Source: Lepidodermella squamata
Taxonomy: Eukaryota > Animalia > Gastrotricha
Assembly (NCBI GenBank): GCA_047495785.1
Contig: JBLDXI010000003.1
Span: forward strand, 1,922,001-1,986,000
DNA: 64,000 bases
Direction: 5' to 3'
In this document: in pieces, positions 48,051 to 64,000 of the stretch
Position numbering within the stretch: the first letter of the stretch is position 1
Layout: the number at the start of each line of letters is the position of its first letter
Program-made: the position numbers and the translations under genes
Notes under the pieces: generated by a model
The model's database searches: none
What the model was told of the DNA's origin: nothing
Seen by the model: the letters and a program-made list of their open reading frames with translations, nothing else

Positions 48051-49049
48051 ATGTGCTCTCAGCTGATTTTCTTCTTACTAATAGCAATCAATGCAGCCCA
48101 TGTATGATGAATTAGCAATACTAGAATATAATTGATATCTGGATTAATCTCACAGGCAATTACCTTTGCTGGCGGGGTCGGTTACTCTCCATTCCACATG
48201 GACGAGTACTACAACGGCACGATCGAGCAATACACCGCTGGTATTGATCAGGATTTTGCACAGATCAAACAGTTCTATGGCTACGTCCGAACTTACGCTA
48301 CGAAGCGAAGGGGAGTAGCTTTAGCTCCTATTGCAGCTAAGCATGGTTTAAAGTTGTATCTAGGGCTCTTTGTTACTAGGGATTCTTGGTACCAAGAGCA
48401 GTTTGATGCAGCTGTCGAGGCTGCGAAATACAACAGAAGTGCTATTGAGGCAATTATTGTTGGAAATGAATGCTTCCCCGATCCTTTCTCTGCTGATGAG
48501 ATGATCGAGAGAATCCAGGCTCTGCGCAAGAATTTGACAGCTGAAGGTATCACTGACATTCCGATCGGTACCGTTCAGACGATTGGAGACTGGGCACCGA
48601 AAGACGACCCGATTCGACTTGCGGATGCGCAGAAATTGGGCAAGGCTAGTGACATAATTGGCGTGAATATCTACCCCCTCTACAGTTCGAATTATGACCC
48701 GGCTAAACCAACCGCGTCGCTTAACTCGAACTGGAACAGAATGATGGACATCGGCGGCCATCCTGCTGAGAAGATTCGCTTGACAGAAACAGGCTGGCCA
48801 ACAGATGGAAGCGACACGCCAACCTCTGGCAATATTCCCAGCATTGCTAATTCTATCAATTATTTCCGCGGCTTCCAGGCCTGGCGGCCCACGCGCGGTA
48901 AAGACGGGGCTCCTGCGTTCTGGTTTGCATTTTACGACTCGAATCCGAGGGAAGGAAATGGGTACAAGAAGTTTTTTGGACTGCGCGACTACAAGCGGCA
49001 GGTCAAAGCGGGAGCCCCAGCCGAATACCCGCCTGCTCTGGCTAAATAA
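48051..49049 (+). CDS. Secreted glycoside hydrolase family 17 (beta-1,3-glucanase/glucanosyltransferase), copy 1 (exons 48051-48101, 48156-49049)
   Basis: Signal exon MCSQLIFFLLIAINAAH. GH17 motifs GVGYSPF, VRTY, KLYLG, IIVGNE (acid/base Glu), IIGVNIYP, LTETGWPT (nucleophile Glu), FWFAFYD..FFG. Confidence 0.92.
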
Positions 49050-49471
49050 AAAGTATCCATCCTTCAGATAAACTGCAATTTATTGGACCTGCTTTATCTT
49101 TATCCCATCTTTTTCGGTAGAGCTCTGTTTTCTGTTTCAGCTCTGTTACATTCAGTAAATGAATGGATTTTATTTCCTCCTTTAGTTGGCATGTCCCATT
49201 TGGCGACTTTTTTAAGCGAAAAAACGGGTTAAATTGGGCTTGTGTAAACATCCTCTCCAATACGTCTTCCACCTGATCCTGTCCTCAGAAATAAGGCTAC
49301 ATAAACTCTTGAGTAAACACGTATAACCGAATAAATTAGCTTTGACCTCGCATAAAAAGCCACACGTCCTCGTTAGTAATTAGGCCTGAATAGAGTTTGT
49401 CATGCATGATAAATGATTATCGAGTATATAATTGCTCAGTTTCGAGATACATGAAGCAAGAATAATAAAAA

Positions 49472-50496
49472 ATGTCAACTAAATTACTTGCCCTAGTTTT
49501 TGGACTTGCAGCAATTGAGTCGTCCATGGTAAGCAGCCATTCTTAACTGTTCAATCACACGATAAAGCATTTATGTTTTAGGCGATTTCCTTTGCTGGAG
49601 GGGTCGGTTACTCCCCATTCCATATGGACGAGTACTACAATGGTACTAGTGAACAATACGCTGCAGGAATCGATCAAGATTTCGCACAAATCAAGCAGTA
49701 CTATCTCTATGTTCGAACGTACGCCACAAAGCGTAAAGGAGTAGCTTTCGCTCCTATTGCAGCTAAGCATGGTCTTAAACTCTACCTTGGCCTCTACGTC
49801 ACTAAGGAATCTTGGTATCAAGAGCAGTTTGATGCAGCTGTCGAGGCTGCGAAATACAACAGAAGTGCTATTGAGGCAATTATTGTTGGAAATGAATGCT
49901 TCCCCGATCCTTTCTCTGCTGATGAGATGATCGAGAGAATCCAGGCTCTGCGCAAGAATTTGACAGCTCAAGGTATCACTGACATTCCGATCGGTACCGT
50001 CCAGACCATTGGAGACTGGGCCCCGAAGAATAACCAGACCCGCCTCGCCCAGGCTCAGAAACTTGGCCAGGCGAGTGATATTATCGGGGTCAATATCTAC
50101 CCGCTGTACAGTTCAAACTACGACCCGAAAAAGCCGACTTATTCCTTGAATCAGAACTGGAACCGAATGATGGATACCGGCGGCTATCCTGCCGACAAGA
50201 TTCGCTTGACTGAAACTGGCTGGCCGACGAATGGTACAGACAAACCATCGTCGGGAAATGTGCCAAATATCACGAATTCCGTCAATTACTTCCGCGGATT
50301 CCAAGCGTGGCGACCAAATCGTGGTAAGGATGGAGCGCCTGCCTTCTGGTTTGCGTTCTACGACGCCAATCCGAGGGAGGGCACTGGTTACAAGAAATTC
50401 TTCGGCTTGAGAGACTACAAGCGACAGGTCAAACCAGGAGCTCCTGCAGACTACCCGCCAGTCGCGAATCCGCCGAATTACCCGACATTTGGCTGA
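49472..50496 (+). CDS. Secreted GH17, copy 2 (exons 49472-49528, 49582-50496)
   Basis: Signal exon MSTKLLALVFGLAAIESSM; same catalytic motifs as copy 1. Confidence 0.92.
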
Positions 50497-51081: not shown

Positions 51082-54000
51082 ATGAGCATGAAGGCGCGAT
51101 TTAACGTAGCCGCTACAAAGGTGGCCAACGTATCGCGCCTGCACCTCGCCATGCAAAGCATATCTAGGACAGTATCGGCAGAATCAGAAGGCGATGAACG
51201 GCAGCGGGAGCAAGAGCAAGAAAAACAGCGGCGTGGCGATCATTCAGAAGAGCCGTCAGTAGCGTCGTCACAACTCAGCATCAGGTCAATCCACCAGAGG
51301 CCGAATTTTCTCCGCAGTTTTATACACATTCGAACAGCTGTACGGCGATTTCGTAGCCTCGGAAGAATGAACGACGACGCTATGTCGATCAGGACTCGCC
51401 TCAGTGCGATTTCTGATGAAGATTTGCTTGATTCTGCTTCGGTCTATCGGAGTAGCAGTGTTCCGGGTTTGAACAGGCTCGATCCGACCGAAGCTGCCTT
51501 GCGAGACCCAGCGATGGCCAAGAAATTGATGCTGATCGTAGCTGCGAAGAAGGGCGAATGGTCCTCGGTGGATTTGATGTTACGTGGCATGAAAAAACAC
51601 TCGTCACGCTTGAATGCGGCTGACCCAGCGACTGGAACGACGACGTTGATGCTAGCGTGTCAGCAGTCTCGGTTTTTGCTGGTTGGAAGAATGTGTGAGT
51701 TGGGGGCGTGGCTCAACCAGCGAGACGAGGAACGCAGAACTGCCTTGCACTACGCAGCTCGAGAAGGACATGAGGGTGGGCTGAGTTTTCAACCTTTGTC
51801 CTCCAAGTGCTCTTTCCTAACTATTTTTTCACACAGAAATAGTTAAGCTGCTTCTTCGCAACCAAGCAGATCCGAATTTGTTTGGAGGGGTAAGTAACGT
51901 AGTAGTTTATGTCTTTCATTCCACTTTCAAAATCATCAAGACATTTGAATTTTGAATTTCGGAATGTTATGCAATGCTTCTTCATTCTTCAGAAAGACAA
52001 TCAGCTGCCACTCCACATCGCAGCGTTGCGGACGGGACCCGGTGCTTTGGTCTCTGCGCAGCAACTACTTCGCTCCTCACTCAAAGAGTGCCGAACCAAA
52101 AAAGACCGACTTGGCAACCTGCCAATAACCTACGCTGTCGAAATCGGCAGCCACACTCTAGTGCGAGATTTACTACAACACTACGCAAAGGAGCAGGTTA
52201 CATGGCGGGACGAACACACCGGCGACTACTTGGTTCATATCGCCGCGAGGAAAAAATTCACTGAGATTATGAAATTACTATGTCTCCTGGGCGGCGCTGA
52301 TCCTAATGTTCAAAATTTAGACGGGCAAACTCCATTACATATTTCGGCGAAATTAGGCGATGAAGCTATGTTTAGGATGATGCAGTCATTTCGACCTAAC
52401 CCGGATTTGATTGATAAAAAGGAGCGAAGTCCTCTCCACGTTGCGGCCGAACACGGCCATGCTGAGATTGTCGAAAGTCTCGTCGAGAGATTTCGCGCTA
52501 ATGTCCATATGAGGACTAAGGATGGTTCAACGCTGATGCACCTTGCGGCTGATAAAGGATTCACGGATGTCGTGCTGGCCTTCATCAAGCGAGGGGTGAC
52601 GCTGAATATGCCGAATAAGGCCGGTGCGTTGTGTTTACACGCGGCGGCGCAGAATGGGCACATTAAGGTTGTGCGCACCCTGATTAAAAATGGCGCATAT
52701 TTGGATGCAAGGACGCGCGATGGCTACACTGCGCTGCATCTATCGGTTCTTCATACGAGGCCAGAAATCATACAAACGCTTCTAGGTAAGAAAATTTGGT
52801 AAGAGAATGTATTGCATAAGTGTGTAATGAGCTCGTATGAATTTTCAGGCCAAGGTGCAAAAGTTGACCTCAAAGGTGGTCCTCTTCGCGAGACCCCACT
52901 CCACATCGCAGCTCGTCTCCCCGAAGGCTACCTATGCGCAGATATGCTCATCAAAAGCGGCGCCGGTGTGAACAACACTACTGATGAAACCCTCGAAACG
53001 CCCCTACACATCGCGGCCAAAAGTGGTATGATCGATCTATTGAAATTGCTTCTTGAGGAAGGCGCCGATCCTATGCGAATGAACAAATCCGGCGAGTCAG
53101 CCCTACATATGGCCGTTCGGCATTGCCACTTCGAAATCGCAAAGGCCATTATTCAGTTCGTCAACTCAATTTCATCAGGTCGAGAGGCGACTAATTTGGT
53201 GAACTTGTCGAATAATGAGGGCGAAACTTGTTTCCATCTCGCCGCCGAGCTTGGCAAGTCGCAGATGCATCATCCATTTGAAGACGTCGACATTATCCGG
53301 CTTTTGCTTGAAAATGGGGCTGATCCTTTGGCAAATTCTAAATTGACGAATGAATCATCGCTGCATTACTGTGCGCGGTCGGGGAATCCGGAGATTTTTC
53401 ATGAGATTGTTCGACATTTGAAGCATAATTTCCAGACAGCTTGTAACAGACAGGATCGCATGGGCTGGTCGCCGGTTATGACTGCGTGCTATTCGGGACA
53501 TGCTTCTGTGGCGGAAATTTTACTGGCTAATGGGGCCAGGGCGGATGTGTTTGATGAGGTAAAGGAGACAATTTTCGAAGTTTGGAATTTTATTTATTAT
53601 CTATTCCCAGTTTGGAAAAGCTGCTCTGCATCTTGCGGCTGAGAATGGTCACGGTTCGTGCTGTGAGATCCTCCTTAAATACAAAGCATTCGTCAATGCC
53701 AAGTCTAAACTCGGAATTTCAACCCTCCACTACGCCGCACTGAGTGGCCATGCCGAGTTGGTTGGTCTTCTTATTCGAAAGTACAACGCTTCCATCAATG
53801 CGCTGTCCTTGGATAAGAAAACGCCGCTGCATATGGCAGCTGGAGCTGGACGAAAGGAAGTCTGCCAGCTGCTGATGAATCTGCGAGCAGATGCGGATGC
53901 AATAGATGCGGTAAATACATTTTCGTTTCTTGTGAACATACAATTTTGAAAATGTTGAATACAGCTTGGTCAAACGCCGCTTCATTTGGCTGCGGAAAAC

Positions 54001-57000
54001 GACCATTCGGAAGTTGTAAAATTGTTTATAAGATACAAACCTGAACTTGTCACAGCTGCGAGCAAGGTAAAAGCAGTTTTTCCTAAATTTACAAGAAAAA
54101 TTGATGAAATTACCGAAAATTACGTCTTGATTGATAATTCCAGAGTGGCATGACCTGTGCTCACATTGCGGCAAAGAATGGAAGTGAAGCCGTTATAAAA
54201 TTGCTTATGCAATTCAACAAATCCTTGGTCACAACCGTTCGGAATCCTGTTAATGAAGCTTTGCCCCTTCATCTCGCCGTGAGCGCGTCGCACGAGTACG
54301 TTGTTAGGCTTCTAATTGATGCTGGCTCATCGCCTATTGCTGAAAACCACGAGGGAATGACTGCTATTCACATGGTAAAATAAGCAAACAAAATTCGCGC
54401 TTTTTCATTATTTTGACCAACAATTTAGGCGGCAAAAGAGGGGGATATGGAGGTTCTACAGGCTATTATTGCTAGTTCTCCCCGTGGAGCATTGAAAACT
54501 AACAGTTTAAAGGTAAGAACTCATTTCGGAAAATTTCCTATTTTCACAGAAATTATATTTAGAATGGAATGTCTCCGCTACATTCCGCGGCATTTTACGG
54601 CAAGTCCGAGATTGTTCGCGAGCTTCAAACTCGAGTCGACGTCAACTCGAAAACGGACCTGCCTCAAATGCCTGGCGTGGTCAGCGATCCAAGTTTGAGA
54701 GCTCTGATCAGCGCTGATGTAAGATAGATCTACATCAATTTTCAGATTTCTATTATTTCCACTTCTAGCATGGCTTGACTCCTCTTCATATGGCGTCTTA
54801 CAGTGGCCATGAAAACGTCGTTCGATTGATCCTTAATAACTCAAGTGTCCAAACCGAAGCATTCTCGGCATTATTAGCCCGAGTGCCTTTACATTATGCC
54901 TGCCAACATGGACATCTCGTAGTAGTAAGCCTTTTGATGTCCCGCTCGGCTGGTCACCTTCGGGCTGAGGACAAAAACGGCTGTACTCCTCTACATCTCG
55001 CCGCTGAGAATGGCCACGCCGAAATGGTTTCGACGCTATTAGCCCAAGGGTCTGATATCAGTAAGGCGGACGCTGATGGCCGAACAGCGTTGCATTGTGC
55101 TGCTGGGAATGGTCATTTAGTCGTAGCTCAGATCCTACTCGAAGCAGGAGCTGTTGCTAATGCAAAGACGAAAGACAACAAAACACCCCTTGCTCTTAGC
55201 GCGAAGGGTGGCCATACCCAGGTCTTCTATTTCCTGTTGAAAAAAGAGCATGATACTGATGAGCTGATTGAGGACAAAGCCTTCCTGATGGATCTGATGC
55301 TTTGCGGAAAGCAGAATCAAAATCAGATCATTGATGAATTCATCCTTCATTCAAAAGCCCCGTTAGATACGGCGGTCAAGTTAGCTGAGCTGTTCCATGG
55401 TTTGGCTTTGAGGGAGAAGGAAAGGGCGAAAGATTTGGGCGAAATTTCCCGTCACTGCGAACGCATGGCTGCCGAGCTCATCGGAATCGCATCAACCATT
55501 GCCCCTCCTGCAGTAATTCTCAGGGCTACAGACACTAAGGGGAAGCAAATGTTGGATATTTTGCTGCAGTACGATATGAAAGAGGTCGTTGAGCACGCGG
55601 CTGTTCAGCGGTATTTGAGTGACATTTGGGCTGGGCCGATGACTAACTGGTCGATGGGTCGTCTGTCGCTGCTCTTCTTCGGCTTCTTGACATGCCCACC
55701 ATTGCTGTGCTACTTTTGTCTACCATTCAAGCATCATAATTATCACCACATTCCCATCATCAAATTCATGGCGATGCTTACGTCTCATTTGTACTTGATC
55801 GCACTTCTTTCGGTTGTAGCTGCCGTCCCACTTCATCCGATAGTTTACCGAGAGGATTTATATCCCATATGGTGAAATTGTTAATGTTTTATATTCCTAA
55901 TTTCTAAGCTTGGTCGAAACAAATAGGTACGAGCTACTTTGCTTAGCCTGGGTATCCGGAATGCTAGTAGCTGAGTTGACTCGCCAAAATCGGTCGACAG
56001 GACTCGGAATGTTGCGATTCATTATCATCGGCTGTTCAATGGTAGCGATATTCCTTCATATTGGGGCAATAATTGCGGAGTAAGGAATCGAATTTTGTTC
56101 TCTTTCCTAGTAAAAGATGTGATAATTTTTTCTTCAGTGATGTTTATAACGACCGGCCCTCTGCAGCCATAATAATGTATCTGCGAAATTTCATGCTGTC
56201 TCTTGCACTTCTTGTGGCCATCGTTATGATCCTGGGTCTGTTATTCCCAAGTTTAGCTATAAATAATGCTGACCTGATTTGATTTTCAGATTTCCTTCAG
56301 ATTCATCACCTGTTCGGCCCCTTCGGCATCATAATTCTCAACGTTATGGTTGATCTTATGATTTTCATAGTGGTCCTGTTCCTTTTCTTGATTGCATTTA
56401 CATTCCTGATTTGCTGCTTGTTCGCGCCGATCAAAAAAGATCCAATGCCTGCCGCGAATACGACAAATATGACGAATATGACAAATCAAACCATCGCTGA
56501 TTCTGGCCAATTGCCTCTTCTGAATATTTCAAATTCAAGCAGCGAGCCGATTATTTCCTCCGGCTCGGGAGAAGGGCCTGAGGAAATTCCTGTAACAACG
56601 ACTCAATCTGGATCAACACGAAAAAAACGAGAAGCAGAAAAAAGTGATGAGAACTCAAGCAAAAAGAGCCAACCTTCCTGCAAGCCACGAACGGAAAAGG
56701 ATACTGGTGGCGAGAAGTTGAAGCGCAAGAAAAGGGACGCTGATCAAAAGCCAGATTACACGGCTTATGGCCGTGTTATTGTCAATACAGACGATCTCAC
56801 TTACATGAGTAATGAGTTAGTTAATTTAATAATTTTATTTCAATTTATTGGTTTGAACTGGCTGGTTAATTCTCCAGAGATCCTCAAACGTTGATCGAGA
56901 TTTTCTTAGCGCTGTACTGGGCGATGTTTCAAATGCTTGACTATCCAGGGGCTCTTCCTCAGATCAAGAATGGCCCGGCCTGGGCTGATACCCTCTATTT

Positions 57001-57646
57001 GATTTACATCTTCATGTGGCTCACGATATCTGGGATAGTCCTACTGCCTCTTCTCATCGCTATTCTGACTGAAACGTACAAAATGGTTCATATGAGATCT
57101 GAGACCGAGTGGAAATTCGTCAGAGCTACTTTGATACGAGACATGATCAAGTTACCTGCGGCTCCTACTCCCCTCAACCTCATTGTCAGGCCGTTTCTCT
57201 ATCTTAGATCTGTTCATAAGCACAAAAGTAAGAAATAATTTCATTTTACTCATAATTAACTCGGATTTCTTAACAGAGCTGATGTGCACACCTTACGCGC
57301 AATATTATTTGGATGAGGACGAGCATGAAGGAGCTGATGAACTCCTGCAGACCCCAGAAGCGTCTGGTGCCCAATCTGGCGCGGCAGGTAAGATTTCTCA
57401 GTCATCTCAGACCTGTTGATCCTATATGATGCCTTTTGATCAGGAAATACCGGCGCAGCGACTGAACAGAAGAGCATTGGTTTAGAGCTTCTAGAGAACG
57501 TTTTAGATTGGTCTATTGTTGTAAGGCGTTATCGATCTGGTATCAAGGGAGAAACGGACGAACAAATGGCTGAGGAGGAAGAGCAGGCCGAGCTCGAGAA
57601 AGAGGAAGGCGCGGCTGAGGCGGCTGCCGCTGCGCCAAATGCTTAA
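51082..57646 (+). CDS. nompC: TRPN/NOMPC-family ion channel, paralogue 1 (multi-exon)
   Basis: Long ankyrin array with NOMPC signatures (RTKDGSTLMH, ETPLHIAAR..G..CA.ML.KSGA, ARADVFDE.GKAALH), LFGPFGIII, EWKF TRP box, APTPLNL, ENVLDW..V.RYR; stop at 57644-57646. Confidence 0.93.
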
Positions 57647-57847
57647 ACATTTCACAGTAGAATTCGATATTTTTCTGTCCCAACTTCCGTCTCACATGAC
57701 AAACTGTCACACGTTCAATCCTGTTTTCGCTCTCTGAGAGTGGTATTGTGATCTGTAAAATGTATGACTTCCTTAGCAATAGCAACCATCGAAGGCAATA
57801 AATAGCACGATTCTCGGCGTATTCTGTTTATTCACCACAAGTCAAAC

Positions 57848-60800
57848 ATGGCTAAATCCGCGGCAAAATTAGCCCTTTTGAAGATGACTGTGCCTGGAAT
57901 GGCATTTGCTTCACATGACGGTGACGCAAGTGGTGCCGAAACTGATAGTCTCGCCGGTTTTTCTCGCAGTGGATCCGTTTTTTCTACTCGAACTGATCTG
58001 CAATTATCAGGCTCTTTTATTACAGCCCCCTTAACGCTTGCCGCAACGCAAAACGGCGGCGCAATGCGCGGTCTTATGGGCGTCTCAACTGCTATGAAGA
58101 GATTCAAGAATCGCAAAGATGAAACTCCGGTACAGACAGATGACGAACAGCGTGACTCGGATCCAGAGGATAACAGTATCAGGTTGAAGAAAAGTGGATT
58201 TTACTTGCTAAGAAATCGGCGAAAAAGCGAGCCGTCGCTCTACGGTGACTCAGAATCGACATCACGCCTCGAAGAGTCAGCTAGCTCCGCGAAAAGTAAC
58301 CAAGCCACTCTATCGTCATCTTCACATTACATTTATACGCCACCACCTCAACCTCCTGAGCCTCCAGAACGAATGGCGTTGGTCTTGGCTGCCAAAAAGA
58401 AAGATTGGAATACAGTTGAGATCGAGCTGAAAAAATGCAAAAGATTTGACCCGAGGATCAACATGGCTGACCCTGAGACAGGTCAAACCGCCTTAATGTT
58501 CGCCTGTCAGCATTCAAGGTTCTTGCTGGTGGGTCGTTTGATTGAGATGGGAGGTATCATGAACCTCCGTTCCGAAGATCGGAGAACAGCGCTTCATTAC
58601 GCAGTAGCCGAAGGGCATGAAGGTTTGAATTCAATAGATTATATAACCCTAATTAATTTCTAAGTCTTCTAGAAATCGTGAAAATGCTCTTGAAGAAAAA
58701 TGCGGACCCTAATCTCTTTGGAGGGGTAAGACATAATTTTAATTGAAATTGTAGGCTTTTAACGTTTTGTGGCAGAAACAAAGTCAACTTCCGCTTCACA
58801 TTGCTGCTCAAAGAGCTGCGACTAGCTTAACAGCGACTCAAGTCCTTCTCAGATCCGGATTTAAGGAAAATCGCATTAAGAAAGATGGCTCCGGAAATCT
58901 TCCAATTACTTACGCTCTTGAAACTGGAAATCCATTGCTTGTAAAGGAAATGTTGAAGCATTTTACGAAGGAGCAAGTTTCATGGAGACACGACCATTCA
59001 GGCGAGCATTTGGTTCACGTGGCTGCCAGGAAGCAAAACACTGAGCTGATGAACATTCTCTGCTCCGAAGCTGGGGCTGATGTGAACGTTCAAAATATCG
59101 ACGGTCAGACACCGCTCCACATTGCAGCAAAAGTTGGCGATGATGCGATGATTCGAGTTTTACATAATTTCAAAGCGGACCCAGATTTGATTGATAGAAA
59201 AGAACGTACACCTCTTCATGTTGCTGCCGAGAATGGTCATACCCATACGGTTGAGAAACTCGTTGAAAAACTCAAGGCCAACGTTCATATGAGGACTAAG
59301 GATGGTTCGACTCTGATGCATCTCGCTGCTGACAGGGGTTATGCAGATACGGTCCTCGCCTTCATAAAAAGAGGAGTTCCGCTTCACATGCCCAACAAAT
59401 CAGGGACCCTGTGTCTCCACGCCGCTGCTCATAACGGACATGTCAAAGTGGTTGAAACCCTGATCCAAAAGGGATCGCCTGTCGACGGTAGGACGAAGGA
59501 CGGCTACACAGCCCTGCATTTAGCTGTTTTGAACGGGAAACCTGAAGTTATTCAGATTTTACTGGGCTACGGAGCTAAGGTTGACCTCAAAGGTGGCCAA
59601 GCTAGAGAAGCCCCGTTACACATCGCATCCAGACTTACTGACGGCTATCGATGCGCTGAAATGTTACTGAAAAGTGGGGCTATGGTAAATATCAGCACTG
59701 AGGAGAGCCTAGAAACCCCTTTGCACATATCAGCGAGAAATGGCTTCCTTGACCTGCTTAGAATGTTGTTAGAGGAAGGTGCGGACCCGATGAGGCTGAA
59801 CAAGTCCGGGGAATCAGCCCTTCACATTGCTGTACGACACTGCCACTATGAAATTGCAAAAGCTATTATCGCGTACGTAAATGACACGACTGGTGGTAGG
59901 GAGGGGGCTAATTTGGTTAATCTAGCGAATAACGAGGGCGAAACTTGCTTCCACCTAGCTGCGGAGTTGGGTAAGTCTCAAACGCATCATCCTTTCGAGG
60001 AGATAGACATAATGCGGTTATTGCTTGAAAATAGAGGGGATCCACTTTCAGTAACGAAATTGACTAATGAAACATCACTGCACTACTGTGCTAGATCTGG
60101 AAACCCAGACATTTTGCAAGAAATAGTTAGGTTTCTAGGCCATGGATTCCAGTTAGCCTGCAATAGGCAAGATAAGATGGGTTGGTCTCCCCTCATGGCA
60201 GGTTGTGAACAAGGGCATCAAGTTGTTACTGAGATATTGCTGCTAAACGGAGCTCGAGCTGATGTTTTCGATGAGGTATAAGACTACTTAGTATGTCATA
60301 CTGTAGTTCACTCAATAAAAATGTTCCATTTCAGCATGGAAAAGCTGCTCTCCACCTGGCAGCTGAAAATGGTCACATAGCTTGCTGTGAAGTTCTGCTT
60401 AGTTTTAAGGCCTTCGTTAACGCAAAATCTAAACTTGGAATTACACCTTTGCACTTTGTAAGTTTCGACTTTTGACCAAACATTTCAATGGATTAAGGTT
60501 GAGTCATTGTTTTAAGGCTGCTCAAAATGGATACGCTGAACTGTGCAAATTGCTGATCGAGAGGTATCACGCATCAGCAAACGCTCTTTCGCTGGACAAG
60601 AAGACTCCTCTCCACCTGGCAGCTGAAGCCGGGCAGAAGGACGTTTGTCAACTACTTCTCAGTCTATATTCTGTTCCGAATGCAGCTGATTCGGTTGGTT
60701 TCCCATAATCTATTGTCCAAATCAAGTTTCATTCAGTTCTTCATCAGGGAAAACCTGTGGAAAAAGCTAATGAGGCTGATGTAAGTGATTTTAATCAAAA

Positions 60801-63800
60801 TCTGTCATATTGCGCTAGAAGTTAAAGCCATATCAAATTTTTCCAGCTTGGGCAAACACCTTTGCACCTCGCAGCAGAAAATGATCATTCTGACGTTGTC
60901 AAGCTATTCATGCGATATAAGCCCGAGCTTGTTACAGCTGCTAGCAGGGTAAATGATCCAATTCTCTAGTTTCACTTTTCTCAGTTATTATTGAATTTCT
61001 ACTAAAGACCGGCATGACATGCGCCCATATTGCTGCTGGCAAGGGATCTGTCGCGGTGATAAAGGAACTCATGCGCTTCAACAAAGCTCTGGTAACAGTA
61101 GCTGTAAACAAGGTAAACGACTCCCTACCACTCCACCTGGCCGTAAGTGGGGGCCACAAAGATGTTGTTCGAGTCCTTATCGAAGCTGGATCTTCAGCAA
61201 TCGCCGAAAACGCCGAAGGAATGAATGCAATTCATCTTGCAGCTAAGGAAGGAAATCTCGTGGTTCTCCAGGCGATTCCAAGAAAAGTTTCATTGAGTGC
61301 TTTGAGCCATAAGGTATAGGCCTATATGCTACATTCTTACAACCATAAAGCCCCTCATTTTAGAATGGATTGTCACCAATTCATGTTGCTGCCTTCTATG
61401 GAAAATCTGACTTCGTTCGGGAGCTTCAAAACCGAGTCGACATCAACATTAAAACTAACCCACCTCAACTAGCTGGCGCAGTTAGCGACATTCAGCTGAA
61501 GTCTTTGATAACTATGGATGTGAGTTTCGGCCTCAATTGATAAACATTGTGTTTAAAATGATTTTATTAGTTTGGCGTGAATCCCCTGCATCTCGCTAGT
61601 TTCATGGGCCATGAGAACGTGGTAAGACTCGTCCTGAACAATTCGATGGCTCGAATTGATGACGTCACAACACTGTTGGCCCGAGTCCCTCTTCACTACG
61701 CGGCTATGAATGGGCACCTAGTTGTGGTGAGCCTGTTGATGTCTCGATCAGCAGCTCACCTTAGATGTAGCGATAAACGTGGAAGAATGCCACTCCATCT
61801 TGCTGCTGAGAATGGTCACGTAGACATGGTCTCCATGCTTTTAGGACAAGGTGCTGAAATAAACGGAGCAGATCATGACGGATGGACCCCTCTTCATTTT
61901 GCTACAAGAAATGGCTTCATTAAAGTCGTGAAGCTTTTGACCGAATCAGGGGCATCTCCGACTTCAAAAACCGCTGATGGGAAAGTTGCTTTAGTTCTAA
62001 GCGCGAGTGGGGGTCACATCGAAGTTTTAAATTATCTCCTGAAGAAGGAACACAATTCTGACGAATTAATAAGCGACAGGAATTTCCTACTCGACTTGAT
62101 GATTTGCGGAAAGACTAACAGCAACGAGTCTATCGATAACTTTGTTATGCATTCGGAGGCTCCATTATACACGTCGACTAAACTTTCGCGGGCTTATCGA
62201 GAGCTTGCTTCAAAGGAGAAAGAACGAGCGAATGACTTGAATGAAGCTGGTCGGCATTGTGAGAACATGGCGACTGTATTGTTGGGAATCGCCTCTACCA
62301 TAGCGCCGCCCTCTGCGATATTACGAGCTGTTGATCCAAAAGGGAAGCCACTGCTCGACGTTCTGTTGGAGAACAACATGAAAAAAGTTGTGGAACATGC
62401 AGCTGTTCAACGTTACTTGAGCGATATTTGGGCGGGTTCGTTGTCCTCGTGGTCAACTGGCCGGCTTTTCTTACTGTTTCTTGGTTTCTTATTCTTCCCA
62501 CCATTTATGTGTTACTACTGTCTTCCGTTCAAGCACCATTCCCATCATCAGATTCCTGTTGTGAAATTCATAGCCATGGTCACTTCACATCTTTATTTAA
62601 TCTTATTACTGTCTCTTATCGCTGGAATTCCTATTGACCCAATCGTTTATCGAAAGGATTTTTACCCGAACTGGCATGAATTAGTGTGCCTTGCAATGGT
62701 ATCGGGCATGATAGTCTCGGAGTTGACCAGATCTGGCATGTCTTCTGGGTTAGGAATGCTCCGCTACCTCATAATCTTATTCTCGCTGTTGGCTTCGTTG
62801 TTGCAGATCGCTGCTATAGTCGCCGTGTAAGTTTTTAAATTTCTAAGCTCGATTCTAATGGCTTACTATCCTTTTTCAGAGCTCACGATGCAAGACACGA
62901 AGCTTTGATACTGATGTATCTGCGCAACTTAATGCTTTCTTTTGCATTATTGTCTGCGATTATTCTTATTGTTGGTAAGTTGATGGCCTCATAATTTCAC
63001 CTGCAGATCATTGTCGATTTTTTTCAGATTTTTTCCTTATACATCATTTGTTTGGACCATTCGGAATCATCATTCGAAGTGTTATGAGAGATCTTGCGAC
63101 ATTCATCGTTGTTCTGTTCCTTTTTCTTATCGCCTTCACATTTCTGGTCTGCTGCCTGTATACACCGATCAAAAAAGACCTTAGCAATTCACCTGGAAAT
63201 GGGACTATCAGGAACTTGACCAATCAGACTGTTGAGACCACGGTAGCTCAGGATTTTCAAGGCGAGCATTTCCTAGTGGACTCAAGTGCGCAATCAAGTG
63301 GGCATGGAGATCCTGATTTAATCACGCAAAATTCCGAAAAGAGCAAAACTAATGAAAATCATGGAGGAAAACCCAAACAAAAGCGATCAGCCGACAACGA
63401 GAGACCTGCCTGTAAGCCGAAAACGGAGAAAGCCGGAGAAGAAAGTAAGGCTAAGGAGTCTAAATCTAAAAAGTCGAGGCGCAAGAAGCGTTCGGCAGAT
63501 CAAGAAGCGGATCCTTCGCCTAATTACGATGAAAGTTACCGGCTGGTAAAAGATGACAGCGATTATAAGATCGTCAATAATTTGCAAGTTCAAGCAACAT
63601 TATAGCGGTGAATTAATGGTTTGTTAATTTTCTAGGAACTACTCAACTCTGATGCTGCTGTTTGAAACGTTCTACTTCTCAATGTTTGCCATGATACCGC
63701 CGGAAATGCTGCCACGTGTGAAGAACGGACCAGAATGGAGCGAAGTGCTTGTTCAATTGTGATTTTCTTCATCTTTCATCGTTCAGATTTCGCATTCGTG

Positions 63801-64000
63801 GCTTTTTCAGGTATTTCGCTTGTTGGATGCTGGCAGCTGTTGTCATCCTAATCCCTCTTCTCATTGCCATGCTATCGGAGACATACAAGCGTATCAATCA
63901 AAGATCGGATGCTGAATGGAAATTTGGCAGGGCGAAATTGATCAGAGATATGATAAAGCAGCCGGCAGCTCCTACACCCCTCAACCTATTCGTTAGGCCC
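57848..64000 (+). CDS. nompC: TRPN/NOMPC-family ion channel, paralogue 2 (multi-exon, runs off right edge)
   Basis: ~29-30 ankyrin repeats by manual count, S1-S6, EWKFGRAKLIRDM, APTPLNL; collinear with paralogue 1. Confidence 0.93.

Follow-up and report, generated by a model that had tools for sequence, protein, structure and literature searches.

The stretch of DNA analyzed here (the window; 64,000 nucleotides of the gastrotrich Lepidodermella squamata) carries two NompC/TRPN genes, which lie head-to-tail on the + strand from position 51082 through the window end. In both genes the conserved Asn of the S6 helix is replaced by Pro, and the Gly of the selectivity filter is replaced by Gln in paralogue 1 and by Ala in paralogue 2. 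The observation of these substitutions is confirmed, and the S6 Asn-to-Pro TRPN pore is a new variant within a known channel family. Our overall reading of the sequences, held with reasonable but far from complete confidence, is that both are maintained TRPN genes whose S6 Pro has a single origin, and that they would form pore subunits with a changed gating hinge and permeation.

Window positions 1–64000 correspond to C3:1922001–1986000 (C3, contig JBLDXI010000003.1), and designations of the form C3:..k give contig positions. The features of the two genes are as follows.

51082..57646, + strand: TRPN paralogue 1, entire coding span; ~14 exons, ATG at 51082, stop codon 57644–57646; colinear with frog TRPN P0006
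56880..57238, + strand: paralogue 1 exon with pore helix, filter, S6 and TRP box; match to Drosophila NOMPC (5VKQ), E 4e-14
56930..56932, + strand: paralogue 1 Gln codon at the filter-Gly site (NOMPC G1506), from the alignment
57047..57049, + strand: paralogue 1 Pro codon CCT at the S6 Asn site (NOMPC Q1551), from the alignment
57276 onward (ELMCTPYAQYY..) and 57494–57646 (ENVLDWSIVVRRY..), + strand: paralogue 1 C-terminal exons, read from open reading frames
57848..64000, + strand: TRPN paralogue 2, extending beyond the window; colinear with frog TRPN, S6/TRP exon continuing past 64000
63635..63752, + strand: paralogue 2 pore-helix and filter exon (..FYFSMFAMIPPEMLPRVKNGPEWSEVLVQ), aligned with paralogue 1 and relatives
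63688..63690, + strand: paralogue 2 Ala codon at the filter-Gly site, from the alignment
63753–63811, + strand: paralogue 2 GT..AG intron between the pore-helix exon and the S6 exon
63812..64000, + strand: paralogue 2 exon with S6 and TRP box, truncated at the window end; open reading frame and alignment
63854..63856, + strand: paralogue 2 Pro codon CCT at the S6 Asn site, from the alignment

Pore sequences of the two genes

In paralogue 1, in which the pore helix reads ..LYWAMFQM.. and S6 reads ..IVLLPLLIAILTETY, the single uninterrupted exon at 56880–57238 encodes ..PQTLIEIFLALYWAMFQMLDYPGALPQIKNGPAW (equivalent to ..IEIFLALYWAMFQMLDYPGALPQIKNGPAW..) and then ..ISGIVLLPLLIAILTETYKMVHMRSETEWKF.., and it aligns with TRPN proteins from end to end. 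In paralogue 2 the pore helix reads ..FYFSMFAM.. and S6 reads ..VILIPLLIAMLSETY. Here the region is divided between the pore-helix exon at 63635–63752, which reads ..LMLLFETFYFSMFAMIPPEMLPRVKNGPEWSEVLVQ (equivalent to ..FETFYFSMFAMIPPEMLPRVKNGPEWSEVLVQ), and the S6 exon from 63812, which reads YFACWMLAAVVILIPLLIAMLSETYKRINQRSDAEWKF (equivalent to ..AAVVILIPLLIAMLSETYKRINQRSDAEWKF). The split codon, tt+g, encodes Leu, the intron keeps the frame, and the distance between the pore loop and the Pro is the same as in paralogue 1. The S6 and pore-helix strings of an earlier reading made from the sequence alone (the initial annotation), together with its exon frames, were right.

When counted on the alignment with 5VKQ, the filter site corresponds to NOMPC G1506, the residue following ..FAVF, and the S6 site to NOMPC residue 1551 (Q1551), three residues above the gate residue I1554. 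The TRPN S6 motif VLINLLIAMMSDTYQRIQ is absent from both window genes, which read LLPLLIAILTETYKMVH and LIPLLIAMLSETYKRIN in its place, and in place of the Gly that ends the TRPN pore helix, paralogues 1 and 2 have Gln and Ala, respectively. The TRP box follows S6 as EWKFVRA at 57107–57127 in paralogue 1 and as EWKFGRA from 63914 in paralogue 2.

Both genes are of the full TRPN type

All searches and comparisons were run exon by exon. Pfam Ank/Ank_2 matches were obtained on every N-terminal exon of both genes; ankyrin repeats were the only Pfam matches apart from an Ion_trans match below threshold on the pore exon. For the exon that contains the last repeats, the linker and S1–S4 (417 residues), the best solved match was Drosophila NOMPC 5VKQ (E 2e-173), with one 377-bit stretch covering residues 976–1385, and 5VKQ was likewise the best solved match for the pore exon. 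In tblastn searches with frog TRPN (P0006; 1644 residues, in a cluster with XP_069588476.1), residues 20–1518 were colinear on paralogue 1 and residues 20–1512 on paralogue 2. No stop codons occur within the tblastn pieces of either gene, so the frames are intact over ~1,500 codons each. This colinearity and the lack of internal stops indicate that both are full TRPN-type genes, predicted to encode ~29 ankyrin repeats, a linker, S1–S6 and a TRP box. In line with the hallmarks of the family, the ankyrin array and linker are present in both genes (frog residues 20–1263 and the 5VKQ repeats are colinear), as is a six-helix TRP core with an EWKF TRP box after S6. The tree described below and the best-match searches also group both genes with TRPN, although the root is weak because the outgroup is a single distant row. 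The assignment to TRPN in the initial annotation is thus borne out by the 5VKQ matches, the frog colinearity and the tree.

The window genes share with Drosophila NOMPC (5VKQ) the ~29 ankyrin repeats, the linker helices, S1–S6, EWKF and the gate Ile in LLIA (I1554). However, NOMPC has G1506 and the polar Q1551, whereas in the window genes the filter residue is Gln or Ala, the S6 residue is Pro, and a 120–180-residue turret lies between S5 and the pore. With vertebrate TRPN1 (frog P0006) they share 37–59% identity per exon, the P(D/E)xLP pore loop and the TRP domain. Frog TRPN reads LFFSLFGLVEPD and IVLINLLIAMMSDTYQRIQ, from which the window genes depart at the Gly, the Asn and several flanking residues; after the S6 site, MMSDTYQ of the frog contrasts with (I/M)L(T/S)ETYK of the window genes.

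The substitutions are rare among TRPN and other TRP channels

In a search of 1.84 billion representative proteins with the paralogue 1 pore exon, the 150 best matches (cluster representatives) were aligned back to the query. Among these 150, the S6 site is Asn in 136, Thr in five, Pro in four (the query not included), Gly in one and Lys in one, and 70 of the 80 aligned rows have Gly at the filter site. Three of the four Pro-bearing representatives belong to one array of the same gene group in a second species. The initial annotation had named a high frequency of Pro or of residues other than Gly in functional TRPNs as grounds for abandoning its claim; in this alignment Pro is rare and Gly prevails, so the substitutions are not common ones.

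This is in agreement with published work, in which the VLINLLIAMMSDTYQRIQ S6 motif was called identical in all studied TRP-N orthologues (Schueler 2015, PMC4494053) and G1506 was identified as the filter constriction of NOMPC (Vinayagam 2018, PMC5951680, Table 2). The conservation stated in the initial annotation holds in that Asn and Gly strongly prevail in TRPN and its nearest TRP relatives, but that of the Asn does not extend to Drosophila NOMPC itself. Residue 1551 of 5VKQ, the only solved TRPN, is Gln; in P0038, a close arthropod representative, the corresponding residue is Asn. Gln in NOMPC and Ser in TRPML at the S6 Asn site have been described (Kasimova 2018, PMC6219692), and the Gln of NOMPC implies that the site tolerates another polar residue. 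TRPML and NOMPC are functional TRP channels in which the residues at this position are both polar and still capable of hydrogen bonding. In contrast, the Pro, Thr and Met found in this genome are absent from the list in Kasimova 2018 (PMC6219692), and Pro in addition breaks the hydrogen-bonding pattern of the helix. For gastrotrichs and rotifers, a literature search returned no report of either TRPN multiplication or an S6 Pro.

An arthropod-like TRPN fragment (L026:476-766; Logan contig SRR30978689_7305) carries an identical Asn-to-Pro change in S6, also with codon CCT. The fragment reads ..LFFSIFGQKE.., ..VIVLLPLLIAMMSDTYHH.. and GLSKLIRN; its filter Gly (FGQ..) and the rest of its S6 (AMMSDTY) are canonical. 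Pro has therefore arisen at the S6 site at least twice, and its presence in an otherwise canonical pore suggests that it is tolerable at this position.

A thirteen-gene TRPN radiation

An exon-by-exon search of the genome (121 Mb) yielded 13 TRPN-derived genes, located on contig C3 (1.69–2.07 Mb and 2.54–2.56 Mb) and on contigs C15, C19, C24 and C54. Seven of them lie within ~375 kb of C3, five of these in tandem. The S6 Asn is absent from 11 of the 13 genes (Pro in five, Thr in four, Met in two), and only one gene, C3:2036.7-2039.7k, keeps the canonical pair of Gly and Asn. The residues at the two sites are:

C3:1693.8-1696.7k, 225 kb upstream: filter Gly, S6 Pro
paralogue 1 (window): filter Gln, S6 Pro
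paralogue 2 (window): filter Ala, S6 Pro
paralogue 3: filter Asn, S6 Pro
paralogue 4: filter Ala, S6 Pro
C3:2036.7-2039.7k, fifth (last) gene of the tandem array of the window genes: filter Gly, S6 Asn
C3:2068.6-2070.7k: filter Ser, S6 Asn
C3:2554-2558k, minus strand: filter Asn, S6 Thr
three more divergent genes (C3:2537k, C24, C19): filter His, S6 Thr
two divergent genes (C15, C54): filter Gln, S6 Met

A maximum-likelihood tree was calculated from the linker-S1–S4 block, which leaves out the S6 and filter sites. The 13 genes group together in TRPN as one clade (97/93). Within its subclade the earliest branch is the Gly/Asn gene, followed by the Ser/Asn gene C3:2068.6-2070.7k. All Pro-bearing genes, that is paralogues 1–4, gene C3:1693.8-1696.7k and four genes of the second species, form one clade (100/97), and both Asn-bearing genes fall outside it. 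Because of this topology, the Asn-to-Pro change is placed as a single event on the stem of the five-gene subclade, before the duplications that gave rise to paralogues 1–4.

According to Schueler 2015 (PMC4494053), exactly one TRPN gene is present in all bilaterians save amniotes, and cnidarians have multiplied TRP-N, with four copies in Hydra and two in Nematostella. The radiation described here resembles the cnidarian case in that a mechanosensory channel gene that is otherwise single-copy has multiplied within one lineage. It differs in that it occurs in a probable bilaterian, comprises 13 TRPN-derived genes and involves divergence of the pore itself besides the ankyrin spring. This 13-gene radiation is unreported, and for this animal it overturns the rule of one TRPN per bilaterian.

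The second species and the history of the filter Gly

The second species is represented by a metagenome contig (ERZ27333047 k141_112921; 39.6 kb, also present in two other assemblies) on which three Pro-bearing genes form a tandem array, and by a fourth Pro-bearing gene on a separate contig. These genes are 59–69% identical in amino acid sequence to the window genes in the linker-S1–S4 block. Pro occupies the S6 site in all four; the filter residues of the array are Ala, Ala and, in the third gene, Gly, and that of the fourth gene was not found. Gene order, the presence or absence of the intron between pore helix and S6, and S6 identity suggest a one-to-one orthology between the window genes and those of the second species.

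The initial annotation had proposed that both pore changes were shared and preceded the duplication. For Asn-to-Pro this agrees with the tree. For the Gly, a single shared loss is not established: Gly is kept beside Pro in gene C3:1693.8-1696.7k and in the third array gene of the second species, which places the loss later than the Asn-to-Pro change. By parsimony, one loss with reversal takes four events and parallel losses take five. Outside the Pro clade, the sister gene C3:2068.6-2070.7k lost Gly while it kept Asn. Within it, the filter residue is labile (Gly, Ala, Gln, Asn), while the S6 Pro is invariant.

Predicted effect on gating and permeation

The window genes retain the pore helix, the P(D/E)xLP loop, LLIA with the gate Ile three residues below the Pro, and the EWKF TRP box. 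Given these gate and pore elements, their products would still be expected to serve as pore-forming subunits. Current models give the S6 Asn a central part in TRP gating, through its rotation and a shift of the pi-bulge. The roles of this residue and of the filter Gly are described in Kasimova 2018 (PMC6219692), Palovcak 2015 (PMC4485022) and Vinayagam 2018 (PMC5951680). In TRP channels with the Asn, its side chain bonds the backbone carbonyl four residues up, and the S6 pi-bulge is thereby switched between closed and open states. In TRPV1, the Asn forms this bond, moves the pi-bulge and flips between a peripheral cavity and the pore, wetting an otherwise hydrophobic passage (PMC6219692).

Pro in its place could form no side-chain bond of the Asn type and donate no backbone hydrogen bond, which would leave the carbonyl four residues up unpaired. 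The Pro would be expected to fix a kink or a flexible hinge at that level of S6, at roughly the depth of the Kv P-x-P motif, and to remove the sole polar side chain of the hydrophobic lower pore, which would become drier. At the outer constriction, a side chain in place of the filter Gly would narrow or reshape the passage. Because of the Pro hinge, the lost polar side chain and the added filter side chain, altered gating and permeation would be expected. Since the S6 Pro is old, common to a whole group of gene copies and also retained by the second species, it is probably a working pore variant. Its functional effect is probably a fixed S6 hinge that replaces the Asn switch.

A parallel is offered by the S6 P-x-P hinge of Kv channels (Palovcak 2015, PMC4485022), in which the pore-lining helix likewise has Pro a few residues above its bundle-crossing gate; under the numbering TRP 670 = Kv 466, the TRP Asn site lies ~1–3 residues from the Kv motif (PMC4485022). 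However, Kv channels belong to another branch of the superfamily and have P-x-P rather than a single Pro, so the likeness would be one of inferred mechanism and not of homology.

That a whole TRP clade has exchanged the S6 Asn/pi-bulge switch for a Kv-type Pro hinge and still gates is a tentative proposal, which we judge somewhat doubtful. If true, it would be a natural experiment indicating that TRP gating can do without the Asn, and the 13 genes, with S6 Asn, Pro, Thr or Met and filter Gly, Ala, Gln, Asn, Ser or His, would constitute a mechanosensory channel set of varied gating and permeation, possibly including heteromers. Purifying selection has preserved the Pro in nine or more genes from two species, and these stand beside Asn-bearing sister genes, which provides matched pairs for analysis of the role of the Asn.

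Alternative explanations

An artefact of wrong exon frames, or membership in another TRP family where such residues are normal, was conceivable at the outset, since the intron between pore helix and S6 in paralogue 2 had been guessed in the initial annotation. It is hardly credible given that a single exon of paralogue 1 covers the whole region, that the GT..AG junction of paralogue 2 is in frame and restores the spacing, that only TRPN-like and other TRP proteins, most of them with Asn and Gly, are found among the 150 nearest representatives, and that NOMPC is the best solved structure. Tandem duplicates that depart from their family at two very conserved pore sites could also be decaying copies (pseudogenes or nearly so), in which the pore changes are neutral damage. 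Several lines of evidence make such decay very unlikely. Besides the frames, intact over ~1,500 codons in both genes, the Pro is specified by four synonymous codons (CCT, CCG, CCC and CCA) and yet is Pro in nine of nine copies from two species, and among the Pro-bearing copies PLLIA(I/M/V)L(T/S)ET(Y/F) is invariant apart from the bracketed positions. Nonsynonymous divergence (dN) between species and paralogues is 0.12–0.33, as against saturated change at synonymous sites (synonymous divergence, dS, is undefined by NG86 and 3–22 by maximum likelihood). When a second haplotype from a DNA run was compared with the paralogue 2 exon at 61577–62830, 21 of the 22 differences listed fell at third codon positions. 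Finally, sequencing run X1 (2015; guessed to be RNA) contains two GT..AG joints of paralogue 2 (60780>60847 and 60947>61007), as well as contigs on the paralogue 1 pore exon (56933–57038) and on its last coding exon. From this evidence both genes are judged to be intact, selectively maintained NompC/TRPN channel genes.

The principal competitor of a working pore variant is a heteromer model, in which the Pro-bearing, Gly-less paralogues do not conduct alone and act as modulatory or obligate heteromeric partners of the Gly/Asn paralogue C3:2036.7-2039.7k, by analogy with the pore-divergent subunits of other TRP families. Such a role, which we rate as unlikely, would fit the existence of a single canonical Gly/Asn gene among the 13, located in the same array, and a filter that drifts (Ala, Gln, Asn, Gly) as if unconstrained while the S6/TRP elements for assembly and gating stay fixed. 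It would also fit the finding that most substitutions of this Asn in NaChBac abolished function, as far as O'Reilly 2017 is reported in Kasimova 2018 (PMC6219692). On the other hand, the conserved gate Ile, the P(D/E)xLP motif and the pore helix suit a conducting pore, the pore of the arthropod-like TRPN is canonical apart from its Pro, and TRPN is thought to be homotetrameric (5VKQ). The reading of the window genes as maintained, conducting subunits with a changed hinge has to be set against four further observations. In the account of O'Reilly 2017 given in Kasimova 2018 (PMC6219692), replacement of the NaChBac Asn was functional only as Asp, so simple loss of conduction has to be reckoned with. 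In AlphaFold2 models of monomeric pore-S6-TRP fragments, paralogue 1 with Pro and frog TRPN with Asn adopt the same three helices with no kink, S6 and TRP forming one unbroken helix (predicted local distance difference test score, pLDDT, of 79 for paralogue 1 and 77 for frog); being models of monomer fragments, they carry little information on a hinge. The RNA nature of run X1 is a guess, its 2–4 fold coverage is patchy, and the run contains no spliced joint of paralogue 1. The linker-S1–S4 tree, moreover, does not settle the one-to-one orthology with the second species.

Additional observations at the locus

In DNA run X2, two haplotypes of near-equal depth (~54 and ~68) are seen at 60624–60892 and 61867–62210. 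They differ at many paralogue 2 sites, mostly synonymous, and by small intron indels (60737–60793); the sequenced material is heterozygous or mixed.

The loop between S5 and the pore is 120–180 residues long and of low complexity in both window genes (56346–56808 and 63048–63605) and contains N-glycosylation sequons and paired basic sites; in most TRPNs this loop is short. The start codon of paralogue 2 lies only ~200 bp beyond the paralogue 1 stop codon (57646–57848), and the pair could exemplify spliced-leader trans-splicing with operon-like packing. Directly upstream of paralogue 1, at 48132–50496, lie two tandem open reading frames for GH17-like glucanases of 305 and 290 amino acids.

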